Below, one piece after another: positions 1 through 51,208 of a DNA stretch of 64,000 bases. The DNA is from Rebecca billardiae RCC1528 (taxonomy: Eukaryota > Protista > Haptophyta). The stretch covers positions 1 through 64,000 of the forward strand of contig OZ251248.1 in NCBI GenBank assembly GCA_965240325.2, read 5' to 3'. The notes beneath the pieces are model-generated. The model did no database searches. It worked only from the letters and a program-made list of their open reading frames with translations, and was not told the origin of the DNA. Position 1 is the first letter of the stretch, and every line of letters starts with the position of its first letter. Position numbers and translations under genes: made by a program.

Positions 1-82
1 CCTAACCCCTAACCCTAACCCCTAACCCTAACCCTAACCCTAACCCCTAACCCTAACCCTAACCCTAACCCTAACCCTAACC

Positions 83-123
<41 letters not shown>

Positions 124-214
124 CCCTAACCCTAACCCTAACCCTAACCCTAACCCTAACCCTAACCCTAACCCTAACCCCTAACCCTAACCCTAACCCT
201 AACCCTAACCCTAA

Positions 215-250
<36 letters not shown>

Positions 251-401
251 CTAAACCCTAACCCTAACCCTAACCCTAACCCTAACCCTAACCCTAACCC
301 TAACCCTAACCTAACCCTAACCCTAACCCTAACCCTAACCCTAACCCTAACCCCTAACCCTAACCCTAACCCTAACCCTAACCCTAACCCTAACCCTAAC
401 C

Positions 402-442
<41 letters not shown>

Positions 443-742
443 CCCTAACCCTAACCCTAACCCTAACCCTAACCCTAACCCTAACCCTAACCCTAACCCT
501 AACCCTAACCCTAACCCTAACCCTAACCCTAACCCTAACCCTAACCCTAACCCTAACCCCTAACCCTAACCCTAACCCTAACCCTAACCCTAACCCCTAA
601 CCCTAACCCTAACCCTAACCCTAACCCTAACCCTAACCCTAACCCTAACCCTAACCCTAACCCTAACCCTAACCCTAACCCTAACCCTAACCCCTAACCC
701 TAACCCTAACCCTAACCCCTAACCCCAACCCTAACCCTAACC

Positions 743-796
<54 letters not shown>

Positions 797-1060
797 CCCT
801 AACCCTAACCCTAACCCTAACCCCTAACCCTAACCCTAACCCTAACACCCTAACCCTAACCCTAACCCTAACCCTAACCCTAACCCTTAACCCTAACCCT
901 AACCCTAACCCTAACCCTAACCCTAACCCTAACCCTAACCCTAACCCTAACCCTAACCCTAACCCTACCCTAACCCTAACCCTAACCCTAACCCTAACCC
1001 TAACCCCTAACCTAACCCTAACCCCTAACCCTAACCCTAACCCTAACCCTAACCCTAACC

Positions 1061-1101
<41 letters not shown>

Positions 1102-1181
1102 CCCTAACCCTAACCCTAACCCTAACCCTAACCCTAACCCTAACCCTAACCCTAACCCTAACCCTAACCCTAACCCTAACC

Positions 1182-1213
<32 letters not shown>

Positions 1214-1432
1214 CTAACCCTAACCCTAACCCTAACCCTAACCCTAACCCTAACCCTAACCCTACTAACCCTAACCCTAACCCTAACCCTAACCCTAACC
1301 CTAACCCTAACCCTAACCCTAACCCTAACCCTAACCCTAACCCTAACCCTAACCCTAACCCTAACCCTAACCCTAACCCTAACCCTAACCCTAACCCTAA
1401 CCCTAACCCTAACCCTAACCCTAACCCTAACC

Positions 1433-1473
<41 letters not shown>

Positions 1474-2608
1474 CCCTAACCCTAACCCTAACCCTAACCC
1501 TAACCCTAACCCTAACCCTAACCCTAACCCTAACCCTAACCCTAACCCTAACCCTAACCCTAACCCTAACCCTAACCCTAACCCTAACCCTAACCCTAAC
1601 CCTAACCCTAACCCTAACCCTAACCCTAACCCTAACCCTAACCCTAATAACCCTAACCCTAACCCTAACCCTAACCCTAACCCTAACCCTAACCCTAACC
1701 CTAACCCTAACCCTAACCCTAACCCTAACCCTAACCCTAACCCTAACCCTAACCCTAACCCTAACCCTAACCCTAACCCTAACCCTAACCCTAACCCTAA
1801 CCCTAACCCTAACCCTAACCCTAACCCTAACCCTAACCCTAACCCTAACCCTAACCCTAACCCTAACCCTAACCCTAACCCTAACCCTAACCCTAACCCT
1901 AACCCTAACCCTAACCCTAACCCTAACCCTAACCCTAACCCTAACCCTAACCCTAACCCTAACCCTAACCCTAACCCTAACCCTAACCCTAACCCTAACC
2001 CTAACCCTAACCCTAACCCTAACCCTAACCCTAACCCTAACCCTAACCCTAACCCTAACCCTAACCCTAACCCTAACCCTAACCCTAACCCTAACCCTAA
2101 CCCTAACCCTAACCCTAACCCTAACCCTAACCCTAACCCTAACCCTAACCCTAACCCTAACCCTAACCCTAACCCTAACCCTAACCCTAACCCTAACCCT
2201 AACCCTAACCCTAACCCTAACCCTAACCCTAACCCTAACCCTAACCCTAACCCTAACCCTAACCCTAACCCTAACCCTAACCCTAACCCTAACCCTAACC
2301 CTAACCCTAACCCTAACCCTAACCCTAACCCTAACCCTAACCCTAACCCTAACCCTAACCCTAACCCTAACCCTAACCCTAACCCTAACCCTAACCCTAA
2401 CCCTAACCCTAACCCTAACCCTAACCCTAACCCTAACCCTAACCCTAACCCTAACCCTAACCCTAACCCTAACCCTAACCCTAACCCTAACCCTAACCCT
2501 AACCCTAACCCTAACCCTAACCCTAACCCTAACCCTAACCCTAACCCTAACCCTAACCCTAACCCTAACCCCTAACCCTAACCTAACCCTAACCCTAAAC
2601 CTAACCTA
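1..2608 (+). repeat. Telomere, (CCCTAA)n
   Basis: About 2.6 kb of tandem CCCTAA from base 1, the orientation expected at a left chromosome end. Scattered small indels mostly in the first ~1.65 kb. Confidence 0.99.
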
Positions 2609-2827
2609 GGGCGCAGGTAAGGGTTAGGGCGCAGGTAAGGGTTAGGGCGCAGGTAAGGGTTAGGGCGCAGGTAAGGGTTAGGGAAATGGTAAGGGTTAGG
2701 GAAATGGTAAGGGTTAGGGAAATGGTAAGGGTTAGGGAAATGGTTAGGGTTAGGGAAATGGTAAGGGTTAGGGAAATGGTAAGGGTTAGGGAAATGGTTA
2801 GGGTTAGGGTTAGGGAAATGGTTAGGG
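2609..2827 (+). repeat. Inverted telomere-variant array, 18-bp units
   Basis: 4 x GGGCGCAGGTAAGGGTTA (2609-2680), then ~8 x GGGAAATGGT(A/T)AGGGTTA. G-rich on the + strand, opposite to the adjacent telomere. Confidence 0.95.
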
Positions 2828-4140
2828 TCGCCGGTACTAAAATGAGAATTTCTCGAAATTGACCGAACCGATTTCAACGAGACTTGGGCTCTGCCATGGA
2901 AATGGGAAGGGCCAGGGGCCCTCCAATTTTGAGAGGATTCGGCTCGGTCAATCTCGAGAAAACATACTTCTAAACGCCCGGAGGGCTGCTGTCGTGCGCG
3001 TAGCGTGCGCGCGCACGCCGGCGCAGTGGTGCGCGAGGGGATCCACGCGCCGTCAAAGCACGCGCGCCTCGGCCAGCTTCGCCACGTCCCACGCGCGGCC
3101 ATCGCGGCGGCGCGAGCGCACTGCCCGGCCCTCGCCCGGCCCGCACGCAAATGCTGCCGGCTGCGCGCCGGCGGCCGAGCCAGTGCACCGCCGAGCGGTC
3201 GAGCGCGCGTGCCGGGAGGATGCATTCGCATCTCTATTACTCGCACGACGCCGCGCAGCGCGTGGTGCCCGTCAGCAACGCGTGAACAGCGCCGCCAAGT
3301 CTGCGCGCAGAGCTCGGCCGCGGCGTGCGCGGCCGTTCAACATAGAGACGGCGCTTCTGCTGCTCGCCACTGCCGACCCGCGCTGACCACGCTGGGGTGT
3401 GCTCGCCCCGATCGCCACGTGCACGCGTCCCTGCAAGGGGCGGCCGCGCCTTCGACGTGAGGCGCGTGCGCGACCAGCGGCATGCAGCAGCTGCGCGTAG
3501 GCGTCTCACTGCCGTGATGGCGCGCACTGGAGGCAGCTCGGACGAGGTGGAAGATGGGGGCGCGGGGGCGGGGGCAGCTGAGCTGGTGCGCGGCGCCAGC
3601 CACGGCCGCGGCGCGCTCCCGCCACGCGCCGCCGAGCAGCACGCGCTGCGGTCGCTCGGCTGGCTCGCTGCCCACCCCACGCGCTGCAGTCGTGTCCACG
3701 CGGGCGCGCGAGTGGAAAGCCCGCGACGGCAGCGCGCGCTGCCCCAGGCCCGGAGCATCGGCACGGCCGCGACAGCCCGAGCCTGGGGCGCGGGCAGCCC
3801 GTGCGGGCCCGCGCGGGCATATTCGCGGGGTGCCACGCCTCGACCTCGGCCGCGGCGCCGCGTGCTGCGCCGAGGCCAGACGAGCCCAGCCGAGCCGGGC
3901 GCGGGCGCGCCTGGCAGTGGCAGCGCGCGCCGCACCGCGCTTGGCGCAGCCAGCACAGCTCCGGACGCACTAGCCTGCTCGGCGCTGCTAGTGCAGCACC
4001 AAAGCGAGTTGAAGCGCCGGGCGGATCGGCCTCTAAGGGCAATAATAAGTTTCGATCGACCGAGCCGACTAACCCGAACCCCGTTGACGGTCAGCCACGC
4101 CGCTTGTCAGAGCGGACGCCGCCTCGCCGCGAACTTATAA
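2828..4140. repeat. Degenerate subtelomeric dispersed repeat (probable non-autonomous DNA element)
   Basis: About 2990-3600 is clearly similar to ~16365-16990 (shared CCAAGTCTGCGCGCAGAGCTCGGCCGCGGCG). A 23-bp inverted repeat lies at 2849-2871/2939-2961. No credible coding frame; boundaries approximate. Confidence 0.55.
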
Positions 4141-12000: not shown

Positions 12001-14310
12001 AGCCCAGGCGGTGCCTTCGGCAGTGCGCGCGGGCGCAGGCCATTATTCATTCGTATTCAGCCGGCGCGCGCGCCGCACCGCGCCTGCGGCGGCCAGCCTG
12101 GCGGTTAAATATCCGATTTTCGAGGTTGGCGTCGCACCCGACGTGGACGGATGAATAATGCGCTGCCCTCTCGCGTGATGTCAGCCCAGGGGGTGCCCTC
12201 GGCAGCGCGCGCGGGCGCAGGCCATTATTCATTCGCATTCAGCCGGCGCGCGCGCCGCACCGCGCCTGCGGCGGCCCGCCTGGCTGGCGGTTAAAAATCC
12301 GATTTTCGAGGTGGGCGTCGCACCTGGCGTGGACGGATGAATAATGCGCTGCCCTCTCGCGTGATATCAGCCCAGGGGGTGCCCTCGGCAGCGCGCGCGG
12401 GCGCAGGCCATTATTCATTCGTATTCAGCCGGCGCGCGCGCCGCACCGCGCCTGCGGCGGCCAGCCTGGCGGTTAAATATCCGATTTTCGAGGTTGGCGT
12501 CGCACCCGACGTGGACGGATGAATAATGCGCTGCCCTCTCGCGTGATGTCAGCCCAGGGGGTGCCCTCGGCAGCGCGCGCGGGCGCAGGCCATTATTCAT
12601 TCGCATTCAGCCGGCGCGCGCGCCGCACCGCGCCTGCGGCGGCCCGCCTGGCTGGCGGTTAAAAATCCGATTTTCGAGGTGGGCGTCGCACCTGGCGTGG
12701 ACGGATGAATAATGCGCTGCCCTCTCGCGTGATATCAGCCCAGGGGGTGCCCTCGGCAGCGCGCGCGGGCGCAGGCCATTATTCATTAGTATTCAGCCGG
12801 CGCGCAGCACCACGGCTGGTCGGCGGCGCCCAGCCTGGCGGTTAAAAATCCGATTTTCGAGCAGTGCGTCGCACCCGGCGTGGACGGATGAATAATGCGC
12901 TGCCCTCTCGCGTGATATCAGCCCAGGCGGTGCCCTCGGCAGCGCGCGCGGGCGCAGGCCATTATTCATTCGTATTCAGCCGGCGCGCGCGCCGCACCGC
13001 GCCTGCGGCGGCCAGCCTGGCGGTTAAATATCCGATTTTCGAGGTTGGCGTCGCACCCGACGTGGACGGATGAATAATGCGCTGCCCTCTCGCGTGATGT
13101 CAGCCCAGGGGGTGCCCTCGGCAGCGCGCGCGGGCGCAGGCCATTATTCATTCGCATTCAGCCGGCGCGCAGCACCACGGCTGGTCGGCGGCGCCCAGCC
13201 TGGCGGTTGAAAATCCGATTTTCGAGGTGGGCGTCGCACCCGACGTGGACGGATGAATAATGCGCTGCCCTCTTGCGTGATGTCGGCCCAGGGGGTGCCC
13301 TCGGCAGCGCGCGCGGGCGCAGGCCATTATTCATTCGTATTCAGCCGGCGCGCAGCACCACGGCTGGTCGGCGGCGCCCAGCCTGGCGGTTAAATATCCG
13401 ATTTTCGAGGTGGGCGTCGCACCCGACGTGGACGGATGAATAATGCGCTGCCCTCTCGCGTGATATCAGCCCAGGGGATGCCCTCGGCAGCGCGCGCGGG
13501 CGCAGGCCATTATTCATTAGTATTCAGCCGGCGCGCGCGCCGCACCGCGCCTGCGGCGGCCCGCCTGGTGGTTAAATATCCGATTTTCGAGGTGGGCGTC
13601 GCACCCGTCGTGGACGGATGAATAATGCGCTGCCCTCTCGCGTGATGTCGGCCCAGGGGGTGCCCTCGGCAGCGCGCGCGGGCGCAGGCCATTATTCATT
13701 CGCCTTCAGCCGGCGCGCGCGCCGCACCGCGCCGGCGGCGGCCCGCCTGGCGGTTAAAAGTCCGATTTTCGAGGTGGGCGTCGCACCCGGCGTGGACGGA
13801 TGAATAATCCGCTGCCCTCTCGCGTGATATCAGCCCAGGGGGTGCCCTCGGCAGCGCGCGCGGGCGCAGGCCATTATTCATTCGTATTCAGCCGGCGGCG
13901 CCCAGCCTGGCGGTTAAATATCCGATTTTCGAGGTGGGCGTCGCACCCGGCGTGGACGGATGAATAATGTGCTGCCCTCGCGCGTGATATCGGCCCAGGG
14001 GGTGCCCTCGGCAGCGCGCGCGGGCGCAGGCCATTATTCATTAGTATTCAGCCGGCGCGCGCGCCGCACCACGCCTGCGGCGGCCCGCCTGGCAGTTAAA
14101 AATCCGATCTTCGAGGTGGGCGTCGCACCCGTCGTGGACGGATGAATAATGCGCTGCCCCCTCGCGTGCGATCAGCCCATAGGGTGCCCTCGGCGGCGCG
14201 CGCGGGCGCGAGCCATTTTTCGCAGCAGTATGCAGCCGGCGCGCGCGCCGCGGCCGGTCGGCGGCGCCCAGCCTGGCAGTTAAAAATCCGATTTGTGAGC
14301 AGAGCGCCGC
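6090..14310. repeat. Subtelomeric satellite, 45 units of mostly 176-187 bp
   Basis: GGATGAATAATG-like anchor counted 45 times from 6094 to 14140. One 160-bp deleted unit at ~13798; the last unit is the most diverged. Confidence 0.98.
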
Positions 14311-14337
14311 GGTTAGGGTTAGAGGTTAGGGTTAGGG
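14311..14337 (+). repeat. Short interstitial telomeric tract (TTAGGG orientation)
   Basis: GGTTAGGGTTAGAGGTTAGGGTTAGGG exactly at the satellite/copia junction. Confidence 0.9.
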
Positions 14338-14640
14338 GTCTCGTCATAGTCCATGCCCTCGATGTGCGTGAAGCCCTTGCCCATGACGCGGGCCTAGAAC
14401 CGCCTGATGCTTGTCACGCTTGATGTTGAAGACGGGCGCTGCCTCGAGCGTGCGCATCCCCGGCTTGCGCGGCACTTCCACCCACGTGTTGCTGGCCAGG
14501 ATGGAGGCGTACTCGGCGTCGAGAGCGGCGGCGAAGCGCGTCGCGTGCGGGCCGTTGAGTGCTTGCACCGCCGTTGGCGTGTCCGAGTGTCAGATGGCGA
14601 GCAGGAGCGCGTAGATGCGCGGCAGCGTGGAGTAGGTACG
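14337..14640 (-). mobile_element. Ty1/copia reverse transcriptase fragment (degenerate)
   Basis: QALNGPHATRFAAALDAEYASILASNTWVEVPR...VFNIKRD, then after a frameshift/stop ARVMGKGFTHIEGMDYDET, the start of a copia RT domain. Truncated at the telomeric tract. Confidence 0.88.
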
Positions 14641-19459: not shown

Positions 19460-19490
19460 ACGACTCAGTTATATTGTACCAATAACACCA
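19460..19490 (-). mobile_element. Terminus of a third split-direct-repeat-family element, interrupted by the CACAGTG element
   Basis: Removing 19491-22128 reconstructs, on the minus strand, (TA)n-AGTGGTGTTATTGGTACAATATAACTGAGT. This matches the termini at 34567 and 40426. The body may extend left to ~18870 (uncertain). Confidence 0.7.
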
Positions 19491-22123
19491 CACAGTGCCG
19501 GATTGGAATTTTCCATGACCATTCGGACGGTCCGCTACTCCGTCAGCGAATCCCGTCTCGGCCGGACAGTGGAAGCTCGCCGCGGAAGCGGGCGACTTGC
19601 GGCGGACGGAGGGCAAACGAGCGGGCTGCCTCGCTCGCGGCGCGACCTACTCCGCGAAGACCGACGAGGCTGCTCGCGGACCCGACTATGCGTCGACGCT
19701 GGCTGGGGTCGTCTTCCGCGTGGCGCTGGGCAAGTTCCTCGCCGCCCTGACGGGTGCTCTCCTTTCGCCCTCACGGCGCGCGCGGTGCGAGCGCGGCGCG
19801 GCCCGCATGCGCCGCGCGCGGTTGCGCCCGAGCCTGATGCTTCAGTCGACACGGCAGGTGTGTCTTGTGGGGTGCAACTGTGTGCTGGTGCCGCTGGCGG
19901 CGCGTCTCACCCTCCTGAGTATCCGTGGGAGGCTGCTTGTATCCACGCGTACACCCCGCCACGCCCGCGGCCCGCCCGCGCAAACGCCGCGCCGCGCAGT
20001 TGTCTTTGACCTCGAGCGAGCCTGAGGCGTGGAGGCGACCGACGGCGGGGTGCGACTTGCCCACCGACCCGAGCCGCATCACCCAGCGCAGCCTCGCCCG
20101 CGACGACGCTTCGCCTGGCTGCCACTGCTCAGCCGCGTGCAAGGCGGGCTGGGCGACGTCTTTGCCGAGCGCGGCTGCAGCGCAGCACGCGAGAGGCTGG
20201 AGCGCCATGACGCGGATGGCGGAGCGGGCTTTGGGCTGGCTGGCATGAGCCGCCAGGCTGTACCGTCCGCGCAGATCGCGCTCGGCCCGGCCGCAGCCCT
20301 CCTGAGCGCGCGCCTCAGAGCTGAGACTGATCACGTGCACGCGCACAAGCCACACTGCCGTGGCTGTGTCGAGCAGCTGCGTGTGCTCGAGGCGCGGCGC
20401 TCGCACGGGCCACGCGGGCGCAGCGGGTGCGCGCAGCTGGCGCACGCAGTGCCACGTCCTGCCGCGCCAGTTTGGCGGCCGTCCGCCCCCCCGAGCTCGA
20501 GTTCTGCGCGCTTTGCGACGGCGCGGCCGGCCGCGCCCATCTTCATGCTTGGGCACGCCAGCATGGCCGCCGCCGGGCCTGCTGCGCGCGCCGAAGCTGG
20601 AGGGCGGAGGAGGGCGCTGGGCTGCTCCTACGGCGTGCTGCAGCTCGGGCAGGCTCTAGCGCGGCGCGGCGAGGCCGTCGCGCCTGCTCGCCGCCGTCGA
20701 GTCGCCCGTGCTGCGTGACCGTCGGCCGCACATGCTCGGCGGCACCGGCAGCAGGCGTCGCATACCAGTGTGCTCGAGCCGCTGCGCGCACCCAAGGCGA
20801 GCTGCTCGAGCGGGCTAGGTGGGCCCACGGAGTGCGCGCAGCTGGCGCACGCAGCCCCGCGTCATGGGGTGTCGGTTTGACGGTCGCCAGCCCCCGTGGG
20901 CTCGAGCGCTGTGCGCTTCACCGCGGAGGTGCCGGCGGCGCCCCGCTGCGCGCAACGGCTGGGCAGCATGGCCGCCGCCGGCGCCGCCGCACATGCCGCC
21001 GCTTACGGGCAGTCGAGAGCTTGGGGCAGCACCTACGGCATGCTGCAGCTCGGGCAGGCTCTTCCAGCCTGCTGTGGCGTGATCGCGCATCTGCCAGACC
21101 GTCGACTTGCCCGCGCTGCAGATTGTTTGCCGCGCGTGCTCGACGGCGCTGCTGCTGCCGCTACGGCCGCGCGTTGCTGCGTCGCGAGCGAGCCCGATGC
21201 GAGCTGAACGGCGGCGTGCTCATCGCTGCTGGGGCAGATGGGCGCGTCGTGGTGGCCACGCACGGTGCTGAGTGCTCGCGCGTGCCAGACGAGGCGCGTG
21301 CTCGCGCTGTGGCTCAATGTCCGGCAGTGCGCGTGGCAGGCCGCAGCTGCTCGCCAACAGAACCAGCGGGCAGTCATCGGGCTGCGCGCGCGCAGCTGAT
21401 GGCGGCGAACGAGCGAGCCCGCACCGCCGCGCAAGGGCTGGGCGACTGGCGCCGAGGTGGCGCGCATGTCGTCCGCTGCCGTTGGCATCGCGGCGGACGC
21501 TTCAAGCTCGTTCGGCCGGCGTCTTTGCTCTGACGCCCACCTGCGAGCGCTGCCGGCACCGTGCTCGGGCGTCAGTATCGGTGGGCTCGAGCACGCGTGG
21601 TGAGGCGCTCGGAGCGGTCGACGGCCATGATCGGGCAGCGCACGGTGGGCGCAGGCCACGCGCACGCCAGCGCCCCGCGTGGCGTGGCTTCACGAGGCGC
21701 AGCCGCCAGGAGACTGTGCTGCCGCGAGCTCGGGCGCGCTCGGGCGCCGTTGCTCTGCATTTTCCGAAAAAATCGGGGTTCGTGCCCTCGACCGGTGGCA
21801 TGCCGCCGGGGTGGCCGCAGCTGCACTCGGAGCAGCGCGCACGGGCACCGCCGTGCGCGCCCGCCCGCTTTCGCCGCCGCCGAGCTCGACCACAGCGCTG
21901 CGCGGGGCTGCGTAGTGCCAACGGCACATGATTTTGTGCCCGCGCCGAGCGCGCGTCGGCGCTCGCAGCGCGCTCAGGCGTGGCCTGCTACCAAGCTCTG
22001 TGCCACGATTCGACGCGCCTATGGTGCGCCGAATTTAGGCGCGCCGCTTCAGAACTTTTCGATGACTCGACTAGTGGTGCGGACAGCTAAATGGGACAAG
22101 TTGGGTCGTTTTCTTGCACTGTG
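19491..22123 (+). mobile_element. Non-autonomous DNA transposon with CACAGTG termini (Transib/RAG-like), copy 1
   Basis: Begins CACAGTGCCGGA, ends TCTTGCACTGTG; flanks CACCA/CATCA (5-bp TSD, one mismatch). 2633 bp with an internal ~405-bp degenerate duplication and no transposase ORF. Inverted copy at 37638-40270. Confidence 0.8.
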
Positions 22124-22531
22124 CATCACTTATATATATATATATATATATTATATAGCGTATATATATATATTAACGACGTGGTATGCAACGGGCAGGC
22201 GTCAGAGTCAGCAAGCTGTAGCAGCAGATCGAGCAGCAGAGACAAACACCAGGATCAGCGCTCCTCGCCGTCGTCCCCCTATATATATATATATATATAC
22301 GGACGCCCGCGTCCGATTCGTATTTCGTTGCCGCGGGACGTCGCTCGGATCCGCCGCGCCGCCAAAACCGCCATTCAACACGACCTGCGCTGAATAAATA
22401 TACGACTCTCGAGCCGCCGCCGCTGACTGACGCTGTGCGGCACGGGCGAGCTCTCCTCCGCCACTGCGGCTGCCTCTGCAGCTGCCCAGCCTCGCGCGCC
22501 GCTTCCCCGGGCGGGCGCGGCGGCCGGCGGC

Positions 22532-34185: not shown

Positions 34186-34566
34186 CCGGCTGACGCACGC
34201 CCGGCGCGCGCGCGCGCTGCTGTGTGCGCGGCGGCGGGAGGCCGCACGCAGCCGGGCGCGCATACCACGCGTGCGTTGAGCTAGCCGCCGCCTGCTCGCG
34301 GCCGGTCCGTAGTCCGCCGCGTTCGTGCCATGCGCCGATACAGGGCATCCGCCGCCGCGTCGCACCGCCGGGCGCCCATGCCGCCACGGCCCGGCGCGCG
34401 TTATACGCCGCCGCCACTAGCGCGCTACTGATGCTCATCACCGCCAGCCCGATCGGGCCCGATCCGTCGCCTCGCGGCTCAGCGGACTGGCGAACCGCGA
34501 GCGCGTCATCATCGTCCGTCGTGCGGCTTAACTCAGACTACTACGACTGGCTGCTGCTATATATAT

Positions 34567-36281
34567 GTGGCGTTATTGGCACAATAACTGAGTGTCTAAG
34601 AGCGACACCAAGATCCGGCTCGCTTGGCATCATCAACCAGCTGTCCGGCCGGGGCGCCCGCCGCCCAGCGCGCGCAGTCCTGGTCGGACCCCTTTTCGGC
34701 AGCCAATCCGGTCGGCACCGGGCACCGCCTGCAGGACTTGCTCGGCGATTCCTGTTCCATCCGCCGAGGCGACTCTTCTGGCCTCGGCGCGGCTCGGCCC
34801 AAGGTACGGGGGCGCCATGACACAAGGCGCCGAGCCGAGCAGGGGGCCCACGACACCGCACGCTACACTCTCCTCCGACCACTCTTGTGAGCTCGGCACA
34901 CAGGAGGTGTATACGCTGCTTTGGTAGTCCCCTCTGCTCGGTGAGGTTGCTGCTGTCAGCGCCTCCGCCCTGCAGCGCCGCACCGCAGCCGCGTCGTCGC
35001 TCGTCCGGCATCACATTCTCGTCCAGCAGCTCACGTGCTGCCGCGTCAGCTCCGCGGCGGCGGTTCACCGTTTGAGATATGCGCACGCCTCGCGCACGCG
35101 CGTCGCGCCATGTGCCGCACGCTCTCGCTCAACACGCGGCTGACACACCGCGCCACCGCGCGCGCGTGAACGCTACGCGCAGTCCCCAATCTTTCTCTTC
35201 TTTTTAACGGGATTCATCAACCACTACTTGGACGCCCGCTCTAACTTATAAACGGGACTCACGGGCGCCCTCTCGACCACGGGCAGCTGCGCCTCCGCAC
35301 TGCCCGCGCCCGTCGTTCGTTGGTAAAATCCCGACCTATGTAACATGATCGTGTCCCAATCATGATCATCATCGTGGACTGTCCCAAGACGCAGTTCACG
35401 CCACGACCATCCAGCTCTCGGTCGTGCTCGACGCTTCGAGCGAGCAGGGCATGGCGGAGTGGTTAGACGTGGCGTTATTGGCACAATAACTGAGTGTCTA
35501 AGAGCGACACCAAGATCCGGCTCGCTTGGCATCATCAACCAGCTGTCCGGCCGGGGCGCCAGCCGCCCAGCGCGCGCAGTCCTGGTCGGACCCCTTTTCG
35601 GCAGCCAATCCGGTCGGCACCGGGCACCGCCTGCAGGACTTGCTCGGCGATTCCTGTTCCATCCGCCGAGGCGACTCTTCTGGCCTCGGCGCGGCTCGGC
35701 CCAAGGTACGGGGGCGCCATGACACAAGGCGCCGAGCCGAGCAGGGGGCCCACGACACCGCACGCTACACTCTCCTCCGACCACTCTTGTGAGCTCGGCA
35801 CACAGGAGGTGTATACGCTGCTTTGGTAGTCCCCTCTGCTCGGTGAGGTTGCTGCTGTCAGCGCCTCCGCCCTGCAGCGCCGCACCGCAGCCGCGTCGTC
35901 GCTCGTCCGGCATCACATTCTCGTCCAGCAGCTCACGTGCTGCCGCGTCAGCTCCGCGGCGGCGGTTCACCGTTTGCCCACCCTCCCACCCTCTGTCTGG
36001 GATAACGGTGCTGTGCAACCCGTGCTGTCTGGTCAGCCAGATCGGCCGTCGACCTCCGTGACTGACGGACCTCACGGGCGCCCTCTCGACCACGGGCAGC
36101 TGCGCCTCCGCACTGCCCGCGCCCGTCGTTCGTTGGTAAAATCCCGACCTATGTAACATGATCGTGTCCCAATCATGATCATCATCGTGGACTGTCCCAA
36201 GACGCAGTTCACGCCACGACCATCCAGCTCTCGGTCGTGCTCGACGCTTCGAGCGAGCAGGGCATGGCGGAGTGGTTAGAC
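34567..36281 (+). mobile_element. Non-autonomous split-direct-repeat element 1 (A1-X-B1-A2-Y-B2; DIRS-order PAT/Ngaro-like)
   Basis: A1 34567-35074 matches A2 35469-35976 (508 bp, one mismatch seen). B1 35258-35468 matches B2 36071-36281 (211 bp). Flanked on both sides by TA repeats; no ORF. Confidence 0.75.
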
Positions 36282-37637
36282 ATATATATAATTATATATA
36301 CGGGACCGGGCCCCACTAGTCACTCGGACGGCCCCGGAGCGTACCGTTGCTCAGGCCGCTGATGCTATATATGAAAATATAATATTCATCCGGCTGCGCA
36401 GTAAATATAACTATATATATATATATATATATATATTCGATTATTAGTACGGTTCAGCGCGTCAGGCAATCGGACCGTGTGATCAGCCTGCCGATGAGGC
36501 TGACGCGTCGGACGTCACTATAGCGCAGCTACGTACCTCGGGCGGGCTCGGACTCGTGCGCGGTCTGAGCCAGGTCCCTATACCCCCGCCCAACCGTGCG
36601 TCGGACACTCGAACCCGCCGCCTCAGATCTAGTGCGGGGCCCGCGCTGGCCGCGCGGGCCCGTAGCGGCTCCCGCGGAGTAGTCCCGCGCCGGCGGTCCG
36701 CGCGGACGCGGTACTCTACGGTATAGCCGCGTTCGACTCCGTGCCGCCGGCGCGGCATTCAGTAGCACGGACATCAGCAGTAGTCGTCCGCAGAGTGCCA
36801 GCAGAGTGCCACTCGGAACGCCCGGCGCGGCCCGGGCCATCCGCGCAAAATATATATATTTCAAAAAGAGCTTTGATTCCTACTGTGCGGGGGGGAGCGA
36901 CCCTGCTCTTCAGCCGGCATGCCGCCTTCAAGCCTCCCTCCCCAAGATAGGTGCCAGCCCCCTCCTTCGAAGCGCGACGCAAACACGTGCGCTTGGGTGG
37001 GCACGCGCACAGATGCGCCGGCGCAAGGCGCAACCCCGCGCCCGTCCACTCTCCGCGCCGGGGGCGCGGCGCAGGAGGCGCGCCCGGCCGCAAGACTTCG
37101 CCGCAGGACGAAATGGCTGCCACTCGGTGCGGCGACCGTCGATAGGTTGCCTCTGCCCGCTGCTCGGGGGCCGCACCCGGCCACGGTCCTCGTGCGGCGT
37201 GTGATCCTCGTGTGTCGCACGAGCCTCTGCCTTCGTGGGCTCCGCGTTTGGTCCCGGCTCCGCCTGTCCTCTCCCTTCTGCACTGGCGCGCGCGCGCGCG
37301 CGCGGCGGCGATGACTGATCGTACTTCACACTCTTCCTGTCGCGCGACCGTGTACCTCTGCATCATACGTATTGCCCGTACGGCTGCATCCAAGTACGTT
37401 TGTACGTCCTGGATGTTCCATTTGCCAGCTACCTCTCTCCGAGGCCTCACGCGTTCGGCTGCCTACTGGGCCCTTGGCTGCCAGCTACGATCCGAATGGT
37501 GTCTCTCCTTGCGCGCGCGCGCGACGCGCGCGGCGCCGCCAACTCTGGTGAGAGCCTCCGCCTGGATCCTGCCTTACTGTCGGCCTCTACCGGCCGTCAA
37601 TGGCCATGTTGCCAAGGGCCGCCGACGGTTGGCCCGA

Positions 37638-40270
37638 CACAGTGCCGGAAAACTGCTCAGGGTGACGTTTTAAGTTGTCCGCACCACTAGTCGAATCATC
37701 GGACAATTCTGAAGCGGTGCGCCTAAATTCGGCGCACCATAGGCGCGTCGAATCGTGGCACAGACCTTGGTAGCAGGCCACACCTGAGCGCGCTGCGCGC
37801 GCCGACGCGCGCTCGGCGCGGGCAAAAAATCATGCGCCGTTGGCATTACGCAGCCCCGCGCAGCGCTGTGCTCGAGCTCGGCGGCGGCGAAAGCGGGCGG
37901 GCGCACACGGCGGTGCCCGTGCGCGCTGCTCCGAGCGCAGCTGCGGCCACCCCGGCGGCATAACGCCGGTCGAGGGCACGAAAACCGATTTTTCGGGAAA
38001 ATGCAGAGCAGCGGCGCCCGAGCGCGCCCGAGCTCGTCGCAGCACAGTCTCCTGGTGGCTGCGCCCCGTGAAGCCACGCCACGCGGGGCGCTGGCGTGCG
38101 CGTGGCCTGCGCCCACCGTGCGCTGCCCGATCATGGCCGTCGACCGCTCCGAGCGCCTCACCACGCGTGCTCGAGCCCACCGATACTGACGCCCGAGCAC
38201 GGTGCCGGCAGCGCTCGCAGGTGGGCGTCGGAGAAAACACGCCGGCCGAACGAGCTTGAAGCGTCCGCCGCGATGCCAACGGCAGCGGACGACGTGCGCG
38301 CCACCTCGGCGCCAGTCGCCCAGCCCTTGCGCGGCGGTGCGGGCTCGCTCGTTCGCCGCCATCAGCTGCGCGCGCGCAGCCCGATCACTGCCCGCTGGTT
38401 CTGTTGTCGAGCAGCTGCGGCCTGCCACGCGCACTGCCGGACATTGAGCCACAGCGCGAGCACGCGCCTCGTCTGGCACGCGCGAGCACTCAGCATCGTG
38501 CGTGGCCACCATGACGCGCCCATCTGCGCCAGCAGCGATGAGCACGCCGCCGTTCAGCTCGCATCGGGCTCGCTCGCGACGCAGCAACGCGCGGCCGTAG
38601 CGGCAGCAGCGGCGCCGTCGAGCACGCGCAGCAAACAAATATGCAGCGCGGGCGAGTCGACGGTCTGGAAAATGCGCGATCACGCCACAGCAGGCTGGCA
38701 GAGCCCGCCCGAGCTGCAGCATGCCGTAGGTGCTGCCCCAAGCTCTCGACTGCCCGTAAGCGGCGGCATGTGCGGCGGCGCCGGCGGCGGCCATGCTGCC
38801 ACGCCGTTGCGCGCAGCGGGGCGCCGTCGGCACCTCCGTGGTGAAGCGCACAGAGCTCGAGCCCACGGGGGCTGGCGACCGTCAAACCGACACCCCATGA
38901 CGCGGGGCTGCGTGCGCCAGCTGCGCGCACTCCGTGGGCCCACCTAGCCCGCTCGAGCAGCTCGCCTTGGGTGCGCGCAGCGGCTCGAGCACACTGGTAT
39001 GGGACGCCTGCCTGCGGTGCCGCCGAGCACATGCGGCCGACGGTCACTCAGCACGGGCGACTCGACGGCGGCGAGCAGGCGCGACGGCCTCGCCGCGCCG
39101 CGGAAAAGCCTGCCCGGGCTGCAGCACGCCGTAGGAGCAGCCCAGCGCCCTCCTCCGCCCTCCAGCTTCGGCGCGCGCAGCAGGCCCGGCGGCGGCCATG
39201 CTGGCGTGCCCAAGCATGAAGATGGGCGCGGCCGGCCGCGCCGTCGCAAAGCGCGCAGAACTCGAGCTCGGGGGGGCGGACGGCCGCCAAACTGGCGCGG
39301 CAGGACGTGGCACTGCGTGCGCCAGCTGCGCGCACCCGCTGCGCCCGCGTGGCCCGTGCGAGCGCCGCGCCTCGAGCACACGCAGCTGCTCGACACAGCC
39401 ACGGCAGTGTGGCTTGTGCGCGTGCACGTGATCAGTCTCAGCTCTGAGGCGCGCGCTCAGGAGGGCTGCGGCCGGGCCGAGCGCGATCTGCGCGGACGGT
39501 ACAGCCTGGCGGCTCATGCCAGCCAGCCCAAAGCCCGCTCCGCCATCCGCGTCATGGCGCTCCAGCCTCTCGCGTGCTGCGCTGCAGCCGCGCTCGGCAA
39601 AGACGTCGCCCAGCCCGCCTTGCACGCGGCTGAGCAGTGGCAGCCAGGCGAAGCGTCGTCGCGGGCGAGGCTGCGCTGGGTGATGCGGCTCGGGTCGGTG
39701 GGCAAGTCGCACCCCGCCGTCGGTCGCCTCCACGCCTCAGGCTCGCTCGAGGTCAAAGACAACTGCGCGGCGCGGCGTTTGCGCGGGCGGGCCGCGGGCG
39801 TGGCGGGGTGTACGCGTGCAATGTCACAGCCTCCCACACAATTTCAGGAGGGTGAGACGCACCGCCAGCGGCACCCGCACACAATCCCACCCTGCGCGAG
39901 CCACCTGCCGTGTCGACTGAAGCATCAGGCTCGGGCGCAACCGCGGGCGGCGCATGCAAGAAGCTCGCGAAACGCACCGCGCGCGCCGTGAGGGCGAAAG
40001 GAGAGCACCCGTCAGGGCGGCGAGGAACTTGCCCAGCGCCACGCGGAAGACGACCCCAGCCCGCGTCGACGCATAGTCGGGCCCGCGAGCAGCCTCGTCG
40101 GTCTTCGCCGAGTAGATCGCGCCGCGAGCCGAGGCACCGCTCGTTTGAGGCTCCGTCCGCCGCGAAGTCGCGGCTTCCACCCGAGTTCCACTGCCCGGCC
40201 GAGACCGGATTCGCTGACTCGAGCTGCGGACCGTCCGAAGCGTCACGGAAAATTCCAATCCTGCACTGTG
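37638..40270 (-). mobile_element. Non-autonomous CACAGTG-terminated DNA transposon, copy 2 (inverted)
   Basis: CACAGTGCCGGA at 37638 and TCCTGCACTGTG ending at 40270. 2633 bp, colinear reverse complement of copy 1. Flanks CCCGA/GACTA do not form a TSD. Confidence 0.8.
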
Positions 40271-40308
40271 GACTAAAGTTCTCGTTAGACACTGTGGTCT
40301 GCTAAGAG

Positions 40309-42169
<1,861 letters not shown>

Positions 42170-49075: not shown

Positions 49076-49288
49076 TCAGAACTGGTCGTCGGAGCCGAGG
49101 TCGTCGCCGTCGTCGTCCTCGTCGTCGTCGTCGTCCTCCTCCTCCTCGTCCTCGTCGTCGTCGATCAGCTCGTCCTCCTCCAGCTGCTGCTGCCGGCCGG
49201 CGCCGCCGCCGATCCCCATGCCGCCGCGCGCCGCGCCGCCGCCGCCGCCGCCGCCGCCGCCCATCGCGGGCCCGCGCTCGATCTCCGG

Positions 49289-49327
<39 letters not shown>

Positions 49328-51208
49328 CTCGTCGGTCTCGTCCTCCTCCTCCCCGCTGTCCGACTCCGCCGGGTTCATCGAGCCGTGCACCACGCCCGAG
49401 TCGACGCCGTCGTCGTACCCGCCCGCGTCGCCGCGCGGCCGGCGCAGGCCCGCGCCGCCCGGCCGCTTGGTCGGGCGCGCGCGCCCGCTGGAGGAGACGC
49501 GCGAGCCGCCGCCGCCGTCGGCGCTCTCGCCGCCCGCGCCGTGCACGCCGCCGCCGTCGTGCTGCGCGTCGTTCATCAGCGCGTCGTCGATCGCCTGCTC
49601 GTCGATCTGCGCGCGGCGGCGGGCGGCGGGCGGGCGTCGGTTTGGCGAGCGGCGGTGAGCGGCGGTGAGGGCGCGGCGGTGAGGGCGGGGCGGGCGCGCT
49701 CGCGGCGGCGGCGGCGTGGCGGCGCGCACCTGCGCCTGCCCGCGCAGCACGCGCAGCTCCTCCTCGCGCAGCCGCTTCTGCATCGCCTTGAGCTGCCTGT
49801 CGTGCTCCTCCAGCCGCTCCTGCTCGGCGCCGTGCACCTTGTCCAGCTCGGCCTCGAGGAACTGCAGGTTGCGCCAGTTGCCGAGGTACAGCTCGTACTG
49901 CTTGGAGAGCGAGGCCTCGAGGCGCTCGTACTCCTCCATGAACGCGGGGCGCACGGCCTGCAGCGAGGAGAGCCGCTTCTGGTGCCGCTCCAGCTCGTTC
50001 TTCCGCTTCTCGATCTGCGCGGCGCGCGCGGCCGCGAGCGCGCGCGCGCGAGCCGCGGGCGGCGCGCGTGGGCCGGCGCCACCCGCCCGGCGCGGCCGCG
50101 CCGTGCGCGCGCTCGCTCGTTGGTGTGCGCACCTTGTTGTTGAGCGAGGCCTCGTCCTTGGAGACGTTGGCGACCATCTTCTCCATCTCCTCGAGCTGCG
50201 CGCCCATGCTCTCCGCCTGCTGCCCCAGCCGGCGCTGCACGTCGCCGATCTCGAGCGAGCGCGAGAGTGCGCGCTGGTGCGCCTCGCGCGCCTCCGGGTG
50301 CAGCTCGAGCAGCTCGTACAGCTTGGCGCTGGCGGGCGGGGCACAGCGCACGCGGCGTGGGAGGAGCGCGCCTCAGCCCGCGCGGGGCGGGCCGCGCGGC
50401 GGGCGCGTCGGCGGGGCCGCGCCCGGACTCACCCGGACTTGACAATGTCTGCGGCGAGCGCGCGCGTCGTCTTGAGGTCGGAGAACTTGGCGCCGCCCGC
50501 CGTGTCCGGGATGAGCGCCTCGTCCTCGCCGCCGCCGCCGCCCGAGACCGCCGCGGCCTCGGCCTGCTTGAACGCGTCGTACAGCACCGTCGCGATCTTG
50601 AGCAGCTCCTTCACCGCGTACCTGCGCGCACCGGCGGCGGCGGCGCGGGGCGGCGGCGCGCGGCGGCGGCGGCGGGCGGCGGGCGGCGCGCGGCGGCACG
50701 GCGTTCGCGCGCGGTCAGTGCGGCCAGCGAGCCCGCGCGCGCCCACCCAGCCGCGCCCACCCCCCACGCCCGCCCAGCGCACCGCCCGCCGCGCGCGGCG
50801 CACCCGTTCGCGGAGTAGAGGTTCTTGATGTTGAGCTTGATGCGCCCCTTGAGCAGCATCGCCTGCGCGGTCGACTTGAGGAAGTGCACGCGGTCCGACT
50901 CGGTCTCGATGTTGTCGTCGATGTCGATGGACGAGTCGTACCGGACGACGAGCCAGCCTGCACGCCGCGCGCGCCGCGCGCACCCGCACGCCGCGCGCCG
51001 CCGCCGCGCGTGAGCCACGCGCCGCCGCGCGGCCGTGCGGTGCGCACGGCGCGGCGCGCCTGCCGTGCGCCTGCGCCTGCGCGCGCGCACCGAGCAGGTC
51101 GGCGACGAGCTCAAAGTTGGGCGAGCGGAAGGACTGCACCGAGACGAGGTGCGGGTACCCGAGGGCCCGCATGATCTCGGTGAAGTTGCGCAGCTCGCGG
51201 TACGACAT
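49076..51208 (-). CDS. CLUAP1: Clusterin-associated protein 1 / IFT38, 6 exons
   Basis: [19 protein letters not shown]...[42 protein letters not shown] and an acidic tail. Exons 51208-51091, 50957-50804, 50621-50433, 50328-50133, 50014-49730, 49606-49076. Confidence 0.96.

Follow-up and report, generated by a model that had tools for sequence, protein, structure and literature searches.

Autonomous members of the Transib superfamily encode a transposase of about 700 amino acids that is homologous to the core of RAG1. Transib is the only eukaryotic superfamily with a 5-bp target site duplication, and its 38-bp termini consist of a CAC-initiated heptamer, a spacer of 23 bp (or 12 bp) and an A-rich nonamer (PMC1131882). 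A true RAG-like transposon has already been published from an alga. This element, AanRAGL from Aureococcus anophagefferens, contains RAG1L and RAG2L genes, makes 5-bp duplications, and carries ends composed of CACACCCAAACCT and a 10-bp element at an asymmetric 4/13-bp spacing (PMC9435367). Transib itself is part of the CACTA/EnSpm-Mirage-Chapaev-Transib (CMCT) clade, which is characterized by 5'-CA..TG-3' termini and target duplications of 2–5 bp (PMC12730594). This CAC-ended clade already holds lineages that combine 2-bp duplications with RAG1-like enzymes: ESTA elements (EnSpm-like, from fungi) duplicate the dinucleotide TA, and their transposases resemble RAG1 by HHpred (PMC12730594).

Here, we examine a 64,000-nucleotide stretch of DNA with a G+C content of 75% (the window), which contains two copies of a 2,633-bp element bounded by the heptamer CACAGTG; all copy statistics reported below are based on these two copies (n = 2). 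A first-pass annotation had assigned the element to the Transib/RAG-like transposons with 5-bp duplications. Our analysis retains from this assignment a heptamer-ended transposon with CAC...GTG terminal inverted repeats. In contrast, the 5-bp duplication turned out to be inconsistent between the copies, and both the nonamer and the 12/23 asymmetry are absent. We conclude that the element is most likely not of the Transib/RAG type. It is probably a non-autonomous member of the CMCT clade that generates 2-bp duplications and is moved in trans.

Two copies of a non-coding element

The homology between the two copies begins exactly at CACAGTG and stops exactly at CACTGTG (Table 1). The first-pass annotation had described the same pair of 2,633-bp copies with the heptamers as their limits, and we found no homology that passes these boundaries. 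Apart from (TA)n of low complexity and a single short motif, the sequences outside the copies are unrelated. The copies share 95.4% identity over 2,612 bp by BLAST and 94.2% identity in a global alignment. Both contain an internal direct duplication, the two units of which (20365-20743 and 20769-21147) are 73% identical; this duplication is old. An extra CACTGTG at 40290-40296 was considered as an element end and rejected, as it apparently lies where units of the neighbouring repeat family join. The left end of the element, scanned as an exact pattern, gave no match in contigs of metagenomes, viruses or prokaryote genomes, and neither did the right end in metagenome contigs.

Table 1. Coordinates of the element copies and of associated features in the window, and identity between the copies along the element.
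Feature	Position	Strand	Sequence or remark
Copy 1, 2,633-bp non-autonomous element	19491..22123	+	homology to copy 2 begins and stops exactly at these coordinates
Copy 2, same 2,633-bp element	37638..40270	-	inverted relative to copy 1, 15,514 bp away
Copy 1, left terminal block	19491..19502	+	CACAGTGCCGGA
Copy 1, right terminal block	22112..22123	-	CACAGTGCAAGA (read inward)
Copy 1, second conserved block	19530..19535	+	GTCCGC, positions 40-45 from the left end
Copy 1, candidate 2-bp target duplication	left 19489..19490, right 22124-22125		CA
Copy 1, 5-bp alternative	19486-19490 and 22124-22128		CACCA vs CATCA
Copy 2, candidate 2-bp target duplication	left 37636..37637, right 40271-40272		GA
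Relic (~27-30 bp) of another repeat family, 3' end	19465..19491	+	ends ...TTGTACCAATAAC-N-CCAC
Internal direct duplication, ~380 bp, two units	20365..21147	+	present in both copies
701-bp identical tract	19944..20644	+	equals 39118-39818 of copy 2
Identity, element positions 1-200			79%
Identity, element positions 201-300			98%
Identity, element positions 301-500			83%
Identity, element positions 501-1100			100%
Identity, element positions 1101-2200			97%
Identity, element positions 2201-2633			91%

A Pfam search with the eight longest open reading frames (ORFs) of the element returned no family above noise (single match: E = 0.094). The longest of these ORFs (368 aa) has no protein relative by word search, and an Rfam search of the element gave no match either. 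The third-position G+C content of the element ORFs ranges from 0.62 to 0.79, as compared to 0.93–0.98 for the host genes in the window. The 149 substitutions between the two copies are distributed 46/59/44 over the three codon positions and show no codon periodicity. The element is therefore non-coding and non-autonomous. Its inverted termini, its presence in several copies whose flanks are unrelated, and its zero coding capacity are the features of a non-autonomous TIR DNA transposon. Since it encodes nothing, the element would have to be moved in trans; within the window, Pfam identified no transposase in 15 flanking ORFs.

The divergence between the copies is a mosaic. The 701-bp identical tract, which includes the fully identical element positions 501-1100, lies between parts that are only 79–83% identical. 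This pattern is inconsistent with a uniform rate and likely reflects gene conversion, either between the two inverted copies or among members of the family. Given such exchange, the overall identity would underestimate the age of the insertions. In addition, the 15.5-kb segment that separates the inverted copies could itself invert.

Next to both copies are (TA)n tracts as well as ends of another small repeat family, and the copies are located in gene-poor islands of lower GC content. Between them are a galactosyltransferase-like gene and a histidine-kinase/receiver gene, as identified by Pfam. Pure (AT)n/(TA)n microsatellites at 40312-40428, 22131-22173 and 22280-22299 form isolated AT islands in this 75% GC genome, and both transposon families in the window are found at or beside such microsatellites. 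The window starts with a 12-bp minisatellite array (1-3000, GC 50%), followed by a long satellite with units of ~183-186 bp at ~6.0-12.5 kb; this stretch, which also holds copy 1, is rich in repeats and poor in genes. A short TTAGGG-type telomere-like tract (14310-14338) inside the chromosome arm is bordered by the satellite and by a degenerate region that lacks codon bias of the host type. The window also contains GT-type splice-site motifs and a Cluap1/IFT38-type intraflagellar transport gene (49079-50428, minus strand; Pfam PF10234, E = 4.8e-23), the best database relative of which comes from the haptophyte Diacronema lutheri with only 47% identity. From the presence of this gene we conclude that the organism is flagellated. 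A search with a 2104-aa host ORF gave no recorded protein.

Element ends and flanking duplications

Read inward, all four element ends follow the consensus CACAGTGC(C/A)(G/A)GA, with the individual sequences CACAGTGCCGGA, CACAGTGCAAGA, CACAGTGCAGGA and CACAGTGCCGGA. This consensus, obtained by realignment, is the same as that given in the first-pass annotation, which was also accurate in describing the ends as asymmetric beyond ~12 bp and as devoid of a ACAAAAACC-like nonamer at 12/23 spacing (four ends inspected). The conserved inner blocks had not been remarked before. In the four-end alignment the invariant columns are 1-8, 11-12, T26, G27 and C29, followed by GTCCGC at 40-45, GTC at 52-54 and ATC at 60-62. 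The block GTCCGC occurs at equal distance in 4/4 ends, with the other three examples at 22079-22084, 37677-37682 and 40226-40231. The left and right ends are thus in register (T26 G27 C29; 40-45; 52-54) and form an imperfect inverted repeat of ~60 bp that is built of small blocks. At the right end, positions 17-38 differ strongly between the copies, and the blocks that border this stretch are conserved.

An A-rich nonamer is absent from positions 20-28 and 31-39 in 4/4 ends, and there is no 12/23-type asymmetry, as the spacing of the blocks is equal at left and right ends. Beyond the heptamer, the RSS/Transib architecture (heptamer, 12/23 spacer, nonamer) is not reproduced. We also looked for subterminal repeat arrays of the CACTA style and found no enrichment of any short motif within the subterminal 300 bp.

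The chance rates of flank matches come from positions in this window that are likewise 2,633 bp apart. The 2-bp flanks are perfect repeats at both copies, CA/CA at copy 1 and GA/GA at copy 2. A 2-bp match occurs by chance at 11% of the window positions, which corresponds to a probability of 0.012 for both copies. Repeats of 3 or 4 bp fail at both copies. At a length of 5 bp, copy 1 matches in 4/5 positions (CACCA/CATCA), as the first-pass annotation had reported, and copy 2 matches in 2/5 positions (CCCGA/GACTA). A match of at least 4/5 arises by chance at 4.8% of the window positions. Neither the mismatch at copy 2 nor the perfect 2-bp repeats at both copies had been recorded earlier. Other copies with 2- to 4-bp duplications had been named as the observation that would speak against a Transib/RAG-like element, and the GA/GA repeat of copy 2 is such a case.

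Copy 1 is inserted into or beside the relic of a repeat family (Table 1) that has four paralogous ends in the window (34572, 35474, 40431 and 41448). All four read ...TTGT(A/G)CCAATAAC-N-CCAC (AATAAC-N-CCAC) and continue directly with (AT)n or with the next unit. Removal of the element plus 5 bp from copy 1 affords an empty site that reads ...AATAACACCAC followed by TTATAT without a gap. This reconstruction fits a 5-bp duplication better, because removal of the element plus 2 bp leaves three extra bases. A paralogous empty site for copy 2 was not found in the window. The repeat family itself occupies 34560-35520 and 40425-41745, and its units end with ...CTCTTAGACA(A/C)TCAGTTATTGT(A/G)CCAATAAC-N-CCAC. 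The units adjoin (AT)n or run head-to-tail, in which case the next unit starts with GTCTA(A/G)CC. The unit spacing is 902 bp (34572/35474) or 1,017 bp (40431/41448). The segments 40425-40725 and 41443-41742 share 100% identity.

How these flanks are read determines whether the element could be a genuine non-autonomous member of the Transib- or RAG-like transposons. Such an element with 5-bp duplications would account for the near-match and the gapless empty site at copy 1 with a single substitution. The heptamer matches the RSS consensus exactly and has CAC in common with the CACAATG of Transib (PMC1131882), a RAG-like transposon with 5-bp duplications is known from the alga Aureococcus (PMC9435367), and the insertions, with a divergence of 17–21% in their unconverted parts, may have had time for some decay. 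However, this explanation requires that copy 2 has lost its duplication by mutation or rearrangement of the flanks, and has gained the perfect GA/GA repeat by chance. It also has to accommodate a 4/5 match of a kind that chance produces at 4.8% of the window positions, and ends with equal block spacing and without an A-rich nonamer at 12 or 23 bp. A 2-bp duplication in turn requires that the CA-N-CA symmetry at copy 1 is due to chance or to a small indel, and the relic beside copy 1 already has a 2-bp indel relative to its paralogues. A rough likelihood comparison favors 2 bp over 5 bp by about 4- to 10-fold, which for two copies only is not decisive. We consider a Transib- or RAG-like origin unlikely, and favor the reading of the flanks of both copies as target duplications of 2 bp (CA and GA).

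Classification and mobilization of the family

The Transib/RAG assignment is not supported by the features examined at this locus. CAC...GTG ends are common to the whole CMCT clade, in which the duplications range from 2 to 5 bp. The heptamer CACAGTG at 4/4 ends conforms to the 5'-CA(C)...(G)TG-3' termini of this clade, and the CA/CA and GA/GA repeats fall within its range of duplication lengths. The combination of 2-bp duplications with CAC...GTG termini suggests that the element belongs to the CMCT clade but not to Transib proper, with Mirage-like and ESTA-like lineages as the closest in features. This placement is drawn from ends and flanks.

The probable history of the locus starts with a non-coding cut-and-paste DNA transposon of 2,633 bp that inserted twice independently, with the two copies in inverted orientation relative to each other. 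The terminal block CACAGTGC(C/A)(G/A)GA would carry the cleavage site. Judging from the alignment of the ends, the inner blocks (around 26-29, GTCCGC at 40-45 and GTC at 52-54) are likely binding sites for the transposase. This enzyme would be supplied by an autonomous relative elsewhere in the genome and would recognize the same ends. After insertion, the inverted copies probably exchanged sequence by gene conversion, which would have produced the 701-bp identical tract.

A more tentative extension of this model concerns the type of enzyme. It is possible, if somewhat doubtful, that the family is mobilized by a transposase with a RAG1/Transib fold that acts on the exact RSS heptamer and inner blocks at fixed spacing, and makes a staggered cut of 2 bp. 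If this were true, the family would define an algal lineage intermediate between CMC elements and Transib/RAG. The CACAGTG cleavage signal would then be older than the 5-bp stagger and the 12/23 rule, and separable from both.

The 2-bp flank repeats at both copies could also have been produced by a different superfamily, such as relatives of ISL2EU/PHIS, with CAC...GTG ends that arose by convergence. PHIS relatives can make 0-, 2- or 3-bp duplications (PMC12730594). However, CAC...GTG termini are characteristic of the CMCT clade and no PHIS-specific feature was seen in either copy, which makes this origin very improbable. The inverted arrangement of the copies and the Polinton-like size of their span (19491-40270, 20.8 kb) could suggest a segmental duplication in inverted orientation, or a single 20.8-kb Polinton-like element with the copies as its long terminal repeats, rather than separate insertions; we reject both, as each arm has its own inverted termini at which homology stops exactly, the outer flanks have no common duplication (CACCA vs GACTA), and the host-type genes in the interior (GC3 0.92–0.98), including those for the galactosyltransferase and the histidine-kinase/receiver protein, rule out a single mobile unit.

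The element described here is best classified as non-autonomous and as a new addition to a known clade. A real Transib/RAG-type element would trace the ancestry of the V(D)J recombination machinery into one more algal lineage, and the evidence at this locus does not support this. The remaining value is modest: the family is well bounded and can serve for the annotation of a very GC-rich alga, and the two copies, with their heptamer and inner blocks, provide a clean substrate pair for testing a partner transposase.

Comparison with known systems

The element is similar to Transib in that its ends start with CAC, with a heptamer that is only one base different from CACAATG, and in the near-perfect 5-bp flank match at one copy. 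Unlike Transib, the element encodes no transposase, copy 2 is not flanked by a 5-bp duplication, and the heptamer is combined with GTCCGC at positions 40-45 as the second block instead of a nonamer after a 23-bp spacer. The RAGL/ProtoRAG elements are distinguished by linked RAG1-like and RAG2-like genes and asymmetric bipartite repeats, neither of which characterizes the element, and by 5-bp duplications, which are not consistent between its two copies. AanRAGL is similar in its CAC-initiated, bipartite-looking ends and in its occurrence in a GC-rich unicellular alga, but its CACACCCAAACCT ends, 4/13-bp spacing and RAG1L/RAG2L genes have no counterpart in the element, and its 5-bp duplications none that holds at both copies.

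The similarities are closer among the lineages with shorter duplications. ESTA shares the length of 2 bp, but duplicates specifically TA rather than CA and GA, and resides in fungi rather than in an alga-like protist. CACTA-like lineages, compared by their ends only, differ from the element with its CACAGTG heptamer and its ends free of subterminal repeat arrays. Mirage makes 2-bp duplications (Repbase), and it is with Mirage and other 2-bp lineages of the CMC/CMCT group that the element shares CAC...GTG termini, inverted repeats that are short and imperfect, and, at both copies, a flank duplication of 2 bp.
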